Assembly: GCA_030704615.1 (NCBI GenBank)
Contig: CM060732.1
Span: 64,604,001 to 64,668,000, forward strand
Source of the DNA: Takakia lepidozioides
Taxonomy: Eukaryota > Plantae > Bryophyta
Direction: 5' to 3'
Length of the DNA stretch: 64,000 bases
Shown here: positions 41,246 to 58,942 of the stretch, piece after piece
Numbering within the stretch: the first letter of the stretch is position 1
Layout: the number at the start of each line of letters is the position of its first letter
Program-made: the position numbers and the translations under genes
Notes under the pieces: generated by a model
Seen by the model: only the letters and a program-made list of their open reading frames with translations
Database searches by the model: none
What the model was told of the DNA's origin: nothing

Positions 41246-42784
41246 ATGTACTTATCCTATTGTTTGTTGTTTATGGAGAATTTGATCTTGAAAGTGTCTT
41301 CTACTTGCACTTTTACTTCATCATTTTTACCACAAATGTTCCACATTTCAGCTGACATTTGACATATGAAAAATTGTTTTGCCCAGTCACATTCAAGGAG
41401 CGAATTCGAAAAGAAGAAGAAGAGCTTCGTGATTGGCAAGAATGGCGGGCTTCCCGGCAGGCTTCAAGGGCATCAAGAGATTCAACAAGTAGAGTTCCAA
41501 GTAACATTTCGGATGATAATGTTACTACTAGGTTCGAGTTCTCTGAAAGTATTTCCTTTTTCATCTGGTGCGGAGACTGTTGTAAGTGGTTGTGGTAACC
41601 GGAGGCGTCTTCGAACACATGCCTTGACTGCGAGCCGTTTGGGATGAGGCTCTGTAATATTAATGGGTTAGTGTAAGCCGTTGTACGGCTTCGAGCCGCT
41701 GGATAACATTAAGTCCAACGGATGTACAGTTGACGTTACATTAGGTCTGACTGCAACACCAAAGTTGCAATCTCTAATAAAATATGAATGTTTATCATCA
41801 ATGTATGTGGACACATTCTTTCATATCATCCTCTTCATCACATGCCATGATTGTTCTATGTTTGGTTTTGTATGTCATCTGATATGACAACCATTTTCTA
41901 CAAAAAGTTTTACATATCTGACCTCACATCATGGTGTAATTTATTGCATCCTCCCATTTTTTTCGTGAACGTCAACTTGGCAGTGGATGTTCTTCTAAAA
42001 CCACAATACATACTTATATTGTCTCCAAAAAATGTTTGGAGGATTATATTGTGTATAAAATAAACAAAATAATTATATATATATATCGATATATCGCTTT
42101 ATTTCAATAATAAATTTTGTTTATTCATATTTCTCATATTATTTCTGGACCAAACAAAAGTCCAGAATTAGTTAAAATAGTGTTGGAAAATTGTCGTGTC
42201 CAGAAATTGCAATATTCCAATGGCGAGATGTCATTTTCTCTACCGATTCGGCGATGTCAACGGTGGTCTCTTACGACTTTGTACGTTTTACTTTGTTTTT
42301 TCTTCGTTTCAAATGCAAGGGGGACTCGTCTTGCTATTCTCACTTAATTTACAAAGAACAATGCTAGTTTTTCAAACAATCCCAAAAATCAGAATTTTAA
42401 GTTTTAATTGATTATTAATACTGCATATAATAATATTATATTTATTAATAATTTAATATTATTGATCAAATGTACATATTTCAGTTTTATCTCCCTATTT
42501 ACTTAAATAGAACTATATAGATGTACATACATTTAGTATTTATCATAAAGTTCATTGACATATATTCATAATGTATCTATTATAGCTTTAATTATCCAAT
42601 ATATAGACAAGAAACATTAAGAGTTTTGACATTTCATTAGCTAATTACCAATATCATATTTATATGTATTATTGTAATATAGTAGTAAATCAAAATGTGC
42701 TCAGCACAAAACCAAAATAAATATAGAAATGTTGTAACATTTACACTGAATATGTGAAGAAACCAATGGAGGAAAGGAATAACA

Positions 42785-44312
42785 TTAGAGCAGACCTTTC
42801 GTACTTTGTAGTGCCAGACAATTTTTGTACATGTGTGCATCTTTTCCAAGTATGCACGTTGAAAATGTCACCAAAGAACGCCTAGCCCCTACCGCTTCGG
42901 AGGACACTAGGAATAAGGTAATCTTGAACTTAATGCACTTGTGCCATCCGACGGTAGTTTTGGCGGCAGCCGGGGGGTGTATTGTTGTGGTGGGTAGCGT
43001 GTTAGTATGGTTATTGCAGTGCAAGCAACGAGATTTTGATTTGATTCTTGATAGAAAACTATTGTAGTGTAAACTAGATACCAATACCCCAACCAGCATA
43101 ACCCCCTGCTGCCCCAATGTTTCGTGTGTGTAACTCTTCTTAGTCCATTTTATATAGCCAAGTTTGGACTTGGACAAATTTCGAGACACAATGTGAGTTA
43201 CATCGAGTAGAGTTTACATTCCATTGGAGCAATACCCATCCAGCCGCGCACTACTATATAAACTGGAGAACGCACCTTGTCGGAAGGCGCATTCAAGAAG
43301 TTATGTGGCTCCATACTCGCTTGTATAGAAATTACGGAGTTAGTTTGGGACAAAAAATAAAACTGCAAACGAAAGTGGAGAAATTGTTTTGAAATGTACC
43401 ATTGAAGCCTTATTGGAATGTCTAGCAGAAGAACAGTGGATTCTCGCGGGCTTGGATTGACGAGGCACCATAACATCCGAGGGAGTCTTCATGTGTTTGG
43501 AGTCCGCTCTTTTTTTCTTGTCAGCCTTTTGTCCTTTGGAATGATTCCTTGCAGAGGAAGGAAATGGCTCGGGGGCTGTTTTTCGCCTCTTTGGTGCAGA
43601 ACATTGTGCGAGCAGTTCAGGGTCACGCTGTGTCGATGCTGGAGATGTTTTGCCATTGAACGATGGGAGAAGTGGAGGGGCAACAATAGGCAAGCACAGA
43701 AAATTGTCCCTTGAGCACTGGACATCCTGGATGGAATGAAAATGCAACGAAGGAATAATTTACCTCGGAACTGCATTCCAATGCAGACATCGTTTGACAA
43801 GAAGATCATAATCTGCAGATTTTCTTACCTGGAGCAACAGATGAATATCAGACCCCAAACTAAGTGAAACTAGGAGAATGAGCAAGGAGCGAGAAATGAG
43901 TTTAAGTCACCTGACTCCTGCGGATCTGGGCTGTCCAACCCTCGTGCTGGGGAGATATGCAAGGAAGAGACGGAAGCAGGTGCAGCGGAGCCGTAGCCGA
44001 GTCCCCGACGGTTGGATAGACCAGACCATGCGTACTGAACATAGAGGGTGAGGAATGTTCGGAAAGGTCGATAAAGTCTCCGGGATATTTGTGTTCTTCA
44101 CCTGCACCTTGGACTTTACCCCCAGGAGGACCCGAGAGGAGAAGAGTGTCGCCTGCTTCCCGGGAGGACAAGGGTCTGACAGAGGATCCATCCTCAATTT
44201 GAGCACCAACGTGAACCCTCGGAAAGCCTTCAATACTCCGACTCACAGCTGATCCGGAGGGTTCCTTTAGGGGACTTAAGGAACCGATGACGTTCTCAGC
44301 ATCTCCTTAAAC
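42785..44312 (-). pseudogene. Decayed exons of unknown function downstream of the FCP1-like domains
   Basis: Consecutive minus-strand ORF fragments with plausible acceptors at ~44312 and ~43815. No recognisable motif. Confidence 0.35.
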
Positions 44313-44642
44313 CTGCCAAAGAGACATAATCATAAATCCGGGAATGCACGAATGCGAACCTCCACTGAACAGTGGAGGTCACTAGATATAGTTTTGTCCT
44401 CGTATGAAGGCCTGTATCAGAGTCTTGGGATTGCCCGGAATGTGCGTCAAGAATTCAACTGAAAATGAGTCAAAATGAGAGTACCATATCTGTCACGTGT
44501 GTGATTACAAGGAAATGAAAAAGAGAAACCATGAAGATATTCAATAGCTCGAGTGAGATGGGATTGATAAAAAATAATTTATTTTGAAGCATCATATCTG
44601 AGACTCTTAAAACTGTTGTCCTCAATAAAATCCCAGAGTGGG

Positions 44643-56169: not shown

Positions 56170-56869
56170 GAAATAAATTTTTCTTCTCTATATGGTCCTT
56201 CTTGTTTGCGTTTGGGGATCCTTTTTGTTATCTTCTTATGTCGCACTGAACCTCGAATGTCCAGTGGACGTTCTCGTCCTTTGTTTCTGATTTGCTGGAT
56301 GCTGGCCTGCTGTACGTCTTGGTCAACAAATATGACCCTGTGGGGGAGTTTCGCCTACATAACATATAGATCACAAGAACAAAATGGGCGGGCACAACCA
56401 CTGGAGTCTTCAAATTCGGTCAAAGAGGTTTTTAACAACGGAAGAAAATAGCCCATTTCCAGTCATTCTCTGAAACATTGGACTTGCTTTTCGCATAACC
56501 AATTCTCCCACTGAAGTCTCCCACTAGGAGGAGCCTTACTCAATCGTTGTTGACATACAGTTTTTCAATTTGCCAGTCCTCAAGTTTTTTCTATGAGGTT
56601 TTCCTCCATTTTCCCTCTAAGCTCTACGACTTTTCTGCACCAAATTTTCATTTCATTTCATTTTCATACTTCTCATCTTTAGCCCTGGTTTAAGATGGAA
56701 TTTTACATGTCCTTTTCCGTTGTTCAAATTTCAAGCAATTTTTATTTCTCATAGTTTTTATTTGGTGGTCTGACTTTTTATCCTCTCTCATGTTTTCTTC
56801 AGATCCATTTTCTCCTATGAGATCCAGGCGCTTCCCAAAAGTCGTTATATAACGCCATTTTCTTTCCAA

Positions 56870-58500
56870 ATCTATTCATACCATAACCATAGCCATAACC
56901 ATAACCATTATGGTTATTGAAATGTCTTCTCCCTTCACATTTGCGCTAGTTTTTTTTCTTTGTTTGGGATTGACATGCATTTAGGCATGTTAAAGTTTGC
57001 TTTCTATGTTACATCTTAATATTAGGTCCAGGTTCCAACGACGAGTCTTTCATTTAAATACTTGTCCATAATATTAGGTTCTTCATTTTTTTTTTGCTTA
57101 CTAGTACCCTACTAACAACACTAAGTTCTAGTGAAGTCTAGAGTTTTCCATAAGACTTATTGTTTGTCTATTTTGTAACTTAAACAAAAACCCTAAACCC
57201 TTACCCTAAACATTTACCCTTAACCCAATACCCCATAACCCTTTCCCTTCCATTTGCAAATGGGAATCAACTATCCATACCATAATTATAACCATTTTGG
57301 TTATCCAAATCTCTTCAATGTAACCAAATTTTCATTTTGTACCATACTAACACACACTAAGTTGTAGCGAGTGCGAGTCTTCCGGCATGTATGCTCACCA
57401 TTTCCGCCTTCAACCCAAGCCCTAAACCCTCGTCGAAAACCCTAAAGAAAACCCTACGCCATTGTTACATGTAAACCCTTACCCTTCCCCTGCAACTGGG
57501 AATGAAGTATCCATACCATAACCATAACTATTTATGGTTATTCAAATCTCTTCACCCTTCACATTGCGCAAGGTTTTGCCTTTGGTTTGGATTGACATGC
57601 ACTTACCTTTTTTATCGAACTTTGCTTTCTATGTATCTTAATACCAGGTTCCAAGGACGAGTCTTTCATTTAAATACTTGTCCGATGCAATGCCTACACT
57701 TCCATAATATTAGGTTCTTCATTTTTTATTTTGCTTAGTACTACCTTACTAACAACACTAAGTTGTAGTGAGTGCGAGTCTTCCAACATGTATGCTCACC
57801 ATTTCTGCCTTCAACCCAAACCCTAAACCCTCGTTGGGAACCCTAAACAAAACCCTACGCCATTGTTACGTCTAAACCTTTACCCTTCCCTTGCAAATGG
57901 GAATGAAGTATCCATACCATAACCATATGTATCTTAATACCAAGTTCCAAGGACGAATCCTCAATCTAAATACTTCTCCGGCCCAATGACTCTTCCATAA
58001 TATTTGTTTCTCCATTTTATTTATTTATTTTTATCCTTCTAACACACACCAAGTTCTAGCGCGACTGTGAGTCTTCCATATTTGTTTGTCCAATAGTGTT
58101 CTTAAACCTGGCAAACTGAAAACCCTACCTTTACCATTACCCCTAAACCATTAATCTTACCATAAACCAATAATTTTAGTGTACTACCCTAGTTACACTC
58201 CAAACCTTATTGTACTACCATGTTACATCTTCTCAATGTTTCATGCTCTTTTAATATTTTCTTTTGTTGGATAAGGTATGATAGAATGATTACAGGGATA
58301 TCAAATTCCTCAACCATGTCTTAATTCTACCGAGTGTGAGTCCATCATATTTGTTTGTTTTTTTGTACCCTAAATCCAAACCCTAAACCCTTACCCTTAC
58401 TGTAAACCCAAACCTTATTACACTTCTCTCTAGTTACACCCCAAACCTTATTGTACTACCCTAGTACCTCTTCCGAATGTCTCATGCTATTCTAATATTT
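56870..58500 (+). repeat. Diverged tandem ~300-400 bp repeats containing CCCTAAA/CCCTTA telomere-like and ACCATA motifs
   Basis: Recurrent ACACTAAGTT(G/C)TAG..AG, AACCCTAAACCCT, TGGGAATGAAGTATCCATACCATAACC and GTCTTTCATTTAAATACTTGTCC. Confidence 0.85.
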
Positions 58501-58942
58501 TACTGCCCTTGTCACATCAAAAACATGATTCATTCCAATGGCGTGGTATGTGACCATTGTGCTTCATATGAATATTCAATCAATAAAATTACTAGCAAGT
58601 TGTATCGAGTATGGTAGAGTACAAGTTTGGCCCATGTTCGATGCGACCCATTTGTTTATCATGATGACCTACAATGGAATATTACTTTATTCGACTTCCA
58701 AGTGGACGTTCAATGAATTGTTCAATACTACTACTTCACATTGAGCACTTCAATGTCAAATGGACCTCTTCTATGACACATTTTGAAAAGAAGTATAATT
58801 TCACCTGAAACTTCACAAAGTTCAATCACACATTACACCATGATATTATTAATATTTCAATTAAATTTAATACAAATATATATTAAATTTAGTCCGGATT
58901 TAAGCCAAAAGTCCAGAATTAATTAAAATAGGGTTTTCCTTA

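Follow-up and report, generated by a model that had tools for sequence, protein, structure and literature searches.

The window analyzed here, a stretch of 64,000 nucleotides from the bryophyte Takakia lepidozioides (contig CM060732.1, positions 64,604,001 to 64,668,000), contains a decayed, high-copy DNA transposon of ~18.6 kb (40300..58934; the left limit is approximate and inferred), and all copies of a 24-bp palindrome detected in the window sit inside this one element. It is a giant transposon of the DUF7869 type, which, judged by its motifs, may be equivalent to Sola1; no paper naming DUF7869 was found in the literature. The transposase gene (52716..56100, plus strand; PF25273, E = 6e-42) consists of two exons separated by an intron at ~54044-54203, located from splice signals, and carries several stops and frameshifts. 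Divergently from it, on the opposite strand, lies an accessory gene whose first exon (48383..49410) encodes ParB-like motifs, and NIF/FCP1-like domains come next. This copy is a pseudogene-level remnant. Four DNA runs, made on two samples, yielded contigs that span 45000-50900 in many variants (80-99%), and the transposon family is therefore high-copy. No RNA run contains the stretch, which does not demonstrate silence.

The right end of the element is a terminal inverted repeat with an internal hairpin (58897..58934, minus strand), matching the point where four copies of one related family split into unique flanks. The same motif ends the related loci L001-L006 and L016 and both sides of L040. 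As the imperfect inverted ends of L003 (1046, 9765) and L040 (8341, 12978) carry this one motif in inverted orientation, it represents a terminal inverted repeat, and Helentron-type ends were rejected for the same reason. A second copy at 42145..42183 (minus strand) matches the right end in 28/35 positions and points in the same direction; it may represent a left end that was inverted, or else a terminus of another element copy. In the simplest reading, a left-terminal segment with the palindrome at 41968 and a NIF domain at 40548 would have been inverted. The target duplication of Sola1 elements is 4 bp long (AWWT/AWDT; PMC3845634). The flanks of L001-L006 are AT-rich and start with AT; no clean target duplication could be read there, and the left end in the window is rearranged.

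Dispersed palindromes within the element

Ten matches to the 24-bp palindrome with at most 3 mismatches were found in the window, with 0.01 expected. Scanning with a position weight matrix revealed 13 sites with scores of 21-41, separated by a clear gap from everything else (scores of 9 or less). From left to right, the sites are 41968..41991 (4 mismatches; 192 bp inward from the inverted terminal repeat), 44357..44380 (1 mismatch; within the NIF gene region, in a non-coding part), 45382..45405 (5 mismatches; other family copies have the consensus C at 45384), 46408..46431 (3 mismatches; other copies have the consensus G at 46428), 46802..46825 (2 mismatches), 48320..48343 (2 mismatches; accessory-gene intron), 49443..49466 (perfect; 33 bp upstream of the ATG of accessory exon 1), 50357..50380 (3 mismatches), 52383..52406 (6 mismatches, one arm good) and 52503..52526 (1 mismatch), both upstream of the transposase, 52719..52742 (3 mismatches; 5' edge of the transposase open reading frame), 54151..54174 (1 mismatch; transposase intron) and 56249..56272 (3 mismatches; just 3' of the transposase). 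The initial annotation had listed about 13 palindromes. Ten of these are good matches and the one at 41968 has 4 mismatches; 52383 retains a single good arm, 45382 had been missed, and 58687..58710, 224 bp inside the right end, is only a half-site (8 mismatches; matrix score 8.5).

Neighboring palindromes are 120-2389 bp apart. The spacer is not free, since in 8 of the 13 sites it is TC or its complement GA. No good copy is present in the window outside 41968-56272; likewise, 1.2 Mb of related loci contained no window-type palindrome, and an exact-match scan of metagenome contigs gave 0 hits. Most sites are indeed single, non-coding and surrounded by unrelated sequence, and splice signals confirm that two of them lie in the transposase intron and in the intron of the ParB-like gene. 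The sole exception to the dissimilarity of flanks is the pair 46408/46802 (40/80 vs a mean of 22), which belongs to a duplicated, probably coding, low-complexity exon; not all palindromes are therefore non-coding. An origin as tiny inserted elements or as ends of miniature inverted-repeat transposable elements was rejected, in agreement with the initial annotation, because no flank duplication was observed and the positions are conserved.

The differences between the copies are patterned. At arm positions 4 and 7, 12 of the 16 changes are C to G; altogether, C-to-G accounts for 13 of 22 changes of C (p = 0.007 compared with the decay spectrum of the family). This variation is as expected for tolerated degeneracy, unlike the ordinary decay of the family.

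The accessory gene

The accessory gene is read on the minus strand. Its first exon (48383..49410) is followed by an intron at 48254-48382, recognized by its splice signals, by a second exon (48002..48253) with a stop near 48200, and by a rearranged 3' part (47200..48001). The protein motifs that had been noticed are present, but the GGQHT motif is out of frame with the start of exon 1 due to a 1-bp frameshift near 48430. Other family copies have an extra A after 48429, i.e., a base was lost at this place in the window.

The accessory protein was searched exon by exon. With exon 1, a word-based homolog search returned nothing and an exhaustive search six fragments. In peat-bog metagenomes, ~100 decayed homologs of exon 1 were found, in which an intron likewise follows the GGQHT..AAK stretch. 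A profile of these homologs matched the window exon 1 with E = 2e-35, and the first exon of the accessory gene of the liverwort Riccia is homologous to that of the window with E = 6e-5; judged by this sequence similarity, the window protein is closer to the peat-bog type than to the Riccia type. Exon 2 is homologous to an exon of L013 (z = 10.8) and weakly to one of the Riccia locus L015 (z = 4.6).

The last exon of the Riccia accessory gene resembles N4-cytosine/N6-adenine (N4C/N6A) methylases (PF01555, E = 0.0016; M.RsrI, E = 0.004; plasmid methylases), and its catalytic motif looks degenerate. In the accessory gene of the window this domain is undetectable. The sequences of related subfamilies diverge from that of the window at 47284, which suggests that the methylase-like part was deleted in the window subfamily. 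The rearranged 3' part also contains a 133-bp inverted duplication (47519-47813), which is common to near-identical, deep contigs; the family thus spread carrying the rearrangement.

The accessory protein is plausibly ParB-like, as had been proposed, and its gene is conserved. The assignment is based on a language-model lead obtained with a homolog, on the order of the motifs, which to our eye recalls the N-terminal domain of ParB, and on published algal proteins of like architecture. The closest look-alikes of residues 55-156 of the homolog P0126 in the language-model search were DUF6551 (0.91), DUF3723 (0.91, 172 shared features) and ParB_N (0.88). A ParB fold is only moderately supported; hidden Markov model, profile and structure comparisons did not confirm it. 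The box characteristic of ParB is altered: in place of GxRR it reads GGQHT in the window; the peat-bog proteins have GQHM, GQHI or GQHT and Riccia has SGQHS, with no arginine there.

Palindrome classes in related elements

Three classes of palindromes were found among DUF7869 elements. L001-L006, L016 and both Riccia loci carry class I, whose core GGGA..TCCC is framed by CATC and GATG. Many of the 80 bog-metagenome loci have class II (core GTGGCCAC), also around their accessory genes, and the palindrome of the window represents class III. Every class has a site in the transposase intron, a cluster 5' of the gene and sites after the stop codon; furthermore, one site is often located 90-225 bp inside an end (window, L001-L003, L021, L040). 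The sites belong to one transposon family and keep equivalent places in its relatives, as the initial annotation had anticipated. The equivalent transposase intron contains the lineage's own palindrome in L001, L002, L003, L016, L040, L062 and L096. This intron site stays in place across the three classes, although each lineage has its own version of the sequence, and it is therefore probable that the palindromes are tags under selection for protein binding; their dissimilar flanks imply that they have been maintained and replaced throughout each lineage.

The gene order is also shared. The Riccia sorocarpa locus L015 possesses a NIF gene, a divergent accessory gene (annotated at 1514-6806) for a protein of 805 amino acids and a DUF7869 gene in the order seen in the window, together with 44 palindromes of its own. 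The transposase and the peat-bog accessory gene are paired divergently, like in the window, in L013, L025 and L047. In Riccia and in L021 the palindromes form tandem arrays. The region 1514-13700 of L015 is largely intact (with a possible 1-bp frameshift near 3860) and is the best natural template. L003-L006 represent an 8.7-kb family with both ends, intact open reading frames and 99.5% identity, in which palindromes are present. The L003 element (1046-9765) is young and apparently complete, is found in many metagenome samples, and has a left part of ~4 kb without a recognizable gene. Whether the accessory gene goes with a CACTA transposase in L007 was also considered; such an association was not established, as the CACTA remnant lies downstream and L013 has DUF7869 upstream. 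A distant DUF7869 gene (L017, 8413-8893), at one edge of its contig, whose genes look bacterial, has five copies of another palindrome upstream.

Other genes of the element and its neighborhood

Besides the transposase and the accessory gene, the element encodes NIF/FCP1-like HAD domains, one in the inverted segment (40548..41084, plus strand; PF03031, E = 1e-7; DxDxT motif not intact) and two more, which are broken and lack an intact catalytic motif, at 44640..46120 (minus strand; E = 3e-6 and 9e-4). An acidic open reading frame (49696..50130, minus strand), possibly an upstream exon, has C-terminal YSP/DSP repeats that recall the C-terminal repeat of RNA polymerase II (Pol II). These Pol II-tail-like repeats share the element with the three FCP1-like domains of altered catalytic motifs. 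Degenerate subterminal repeats of 240-400 bp, in which the palindrome is absent, are located at 56870..58500.

A second, more decayed DUF7869 remnant is present in opposite orientation at 60191-61594 (minus strand), cut by a long terminal repeat (LTR) element at ~61924; its surroundings contain no palindrome of class I, II or III. The LTR retrotransposon family has two inverted, ~92% identical copies (35800-38561 and 61924-64000) that flank the region. Directly after the LTR lies a SWIM zinc-finger remnant of a Mutator-like transposase (38570-38760). Judged by their open reading frames, the stretches 300-15900 and 29800-33500 hold a Mutator-like element, rich in short repeats of AGACC type, and the remnant of a piggyBac-like transposase.

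Possible binders of the palindromes

We suggest, giving it about an even chance, that the palindromes are family-specific and are bound by a dimeric protein that the element encodes, most likely the accessory protein, which would keep the element expressed or less silenced. Intact master copies would supply the accessory protein in cis or in trans, and the protein would bind the palindromes in introns, in promoters and near both ends. The bound long element could then stay expressible or less silenced, in the way VANDAL elements do under VANC. The ancestral accessory protein may have possessed a degenerate N4C/N6A-methylase-like domain, as in the Riccia homolog, most of which the window subfamily would have lost. 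The occurrence of class I across distant transposases and the likeness between the centers of classes II and III (the center of the window palindrome aligns with that of peat-bog class II at 7/10 positions) fit the accessory protein as the reader of the sites, in comparisons that cover few independent lineages. Of this picture, the sites, their restriction to the element, their conserved positions with lineage-specific sequence, the gene order and the homology to the Riccia gene are observed, and the fold of the accessory protein, the identity of the binder and an anti-silencing role are inferred.

Several observations speak against this proposal. Searches with the ParB-like part in Pfam, NCBIfam, PADLOC, PHROG and PDB sequences were blank, as were those in phage and plasmid sequences. 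The structure model was poor (pLDDT, predicted local distance difference test, of 53) and fold searches with it were blank, another prediction (pLDDT 32) being too poor for use; a profile comparison with four plasmid ParBs, a weak test, was negative. Decay of the C-to-T type is in excess in the window copy compared with other copies, so that this copy was not fully protected. An indirect hint at a loss of DNA methylation comes from its CpG observed/expected ratio, 0.72-0.80 vs 0.49-0.57 for the neighbors, but the age of the element explains this lesser depletion equally well. L003-L006, the compact L040 and L098 hold palindromes and have no detectable accessory gene. The idea that a ParB-like protein marks the element through these sites is strengthened by their lineage specificity and weakened by L003, L040 and L098. 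The accessory gene and the transposase travel together, and the transposase tree does not settle the window sequence between the class I and class II clades (support of 0.25, with Riccia outside), so that co-variation cannot separate the two candidate binders.

The persistence of palindromes without a detectable ParB gene makes the transposase, already named as an alternative binder in the initial annotation, a serious rival. The sites, internal or subterminal, would then serve in pairing the ends of the long element or in regulating the transposase promoter, and the accessory gene would be optional cargo. We consider this explanation, the main rival, less likely than the first. In its favor, all DUF7869 clades in the sample that are well preserved and of some size surround their transposase gene with palindromes, whether an accessory gene accompanies it or not; the palindrome class tracks transposase clades, and a site is located ~90-225 bp inside the ends (window, L001-L003, L021, L040). 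Moreover, the AtMu1 transposase alone binds its own motifs and activates cognate copies (10.64898/2026.08.24.746577). However, AtMu1 binds terminal repeats, and in the DUF7869 family these already contain a hairpin motif of their own. Some palindromes are as far as 10 kb from the transposase, in introns of the accessory gene and the NIF genes, and the Riccia transposase, with 39% identity, shares class I with L001-L006, whereas the window transposase, which is 53-56% identical, does not. Furthermore, the ParB-like genes of red algae accompany inverted repeats on an unrelated superfamily.

A true ParB/parS-like clamp, with nucleotide-dependent loading at the palindromes and spreading, would compact the element for end pairing or hold an excised copy. 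It would agree with the two-fold symmetry of the 24-bp sites and their distribution along the element, with the look-alikes from the ParB clan in the language-model search and with a motif order that resembles that of the ParB N-terminal domain. The arginines of the ParB box (GxxRxxA) bind cytidine triphosphate (CTP), however, and these are absent from the box of the window, peat-bog and Riccia proteins; no ParA-like gene is present among the open reading frames of the element that were scanned, and structure predictions gave no confirmation. We regard such a clamp as improbable. The same low probability applies to an extended version of it, in which a ParB-derived, nucleotide-switched clamp at the dispersed palindromes would compact or shield the 18-kb element while the altered NIF-phosphatase and Pol II-tail-like cargo would act on transcription. 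Least probable is that the sites recruit a host factor or stem from copying (gene conversion, small duplications) with little present function: the duplication that produced 46408/46802, the tandem arrays in Riccia and L021 and the decay of the window copy would agree with this, but most flanks are unrelated, different lineages keep the positions and have another sequence in all sites of an element, and neither the rest of the window nor 1.2 Mb of related loci contained a match.

Relation to known systems

A close parallel to the Takakia element is Sola1-1_Ec32 of Ectocarpus, a 21.5-kb Sola1 element with a ParB-like plus N4C/N6A-methylase gene opposite the transposase, for which self-binding and self-modification were proposed (PMC12477816). 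The two are alike in architecture (a giant element, Sola1-like in the window, with an accessory gene opposite the transposase). No palindromes were reported for the Ectocarpus element (PMC12477816), whereas the Takakia element has dispersed palindromes and NIF-like cargo and comes from a land plant; the methylase part, included in the Ectocarpus gene, is degenerate in Riccia and undetectable in the window copy. In red algae, the accessory gene PAG3 of Plavaka elements is ParB-like and adjoins inverted repeats, and the idea of ParB/parS self-binding was stated for it; accessory genes of these algae move between transposon families (10.1101/2025.02.11.637652). The combination of a ParB-like gene and inverted repeats on one element is common to the red-algal and the window element, but the former has an EnSpm/Plavaka transposase, a 2-oxoglutarate oxygenase as second domain and tandem repeat arrays beside the gene instead of single dispersed sites. 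The idea put forward in the initial annotation was therefore not new, having been stated for red-algal Plavaka (10.1101/2025.02.11.637652), and a Sola1 with a divergent ParB-methylase gene is described from Ectocarpus (PMC12477816).

In VANDAL elements, the motifs bound by VANC are found both in introns and between genes (PMC5735166). Like the window element, these are DNA transposons with several genes whose non-coding parts hold motifs specific to the family and different in other families. VANDAL elements, however, belong to the Mutator superfamily and have short, non-palindromic tandem motifs with an experimentally shown function, whereas the window element is of the DUF7869 type with mostly single sites. 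There was no sign of VANC homology, the accessory exons having no Pfam match, though no direct comparison with VANC was made. DUF3723 (PF12520), among the top look-alikes of the ParB-like domain, is a Starship accessory protein carried by giant fungal transposons (also in the abstract of PMC12506042); it gave no hidden Markov model match, and the transposase class is different. No paper linking DUF3723 with ParB was found in the literature.

The likeness to bacterial ParB/parS lies in repeated palindromic sites in cis and in a ParB-clan-like N-terminal domain, the latter as a lead only. Bacterial parS sites are 16 bp long. The Takakia system differs in its 24-bp sites, its altered arginine box, its location on an integrated transposon and in that no ParA was found.

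Significance

The ParB-plus-inverted-repeat design is already published for algal transposons; the land-plant variant is new, and no paper on a land-plant DUF7869 version, on dispersed sites or on NIF cargo was found in the literature. To our knowledge, only VANDAL and Spm-type transposons have been shown to recognize copies of themselves and relieve their silencing. Should the palindromes be read by a ParB-like protein, this would be a second, older design of self-recognition, extending from algae to bryophyte-grade plants, and Marchantia and Physcomitrium make such self-recognition testable. The three lineage-specific palindrome classes provide ready pairs of cognate and non-cognate proteins and sites. 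Whichever protein binds them, single dispersed sites have changed in concert along an element.

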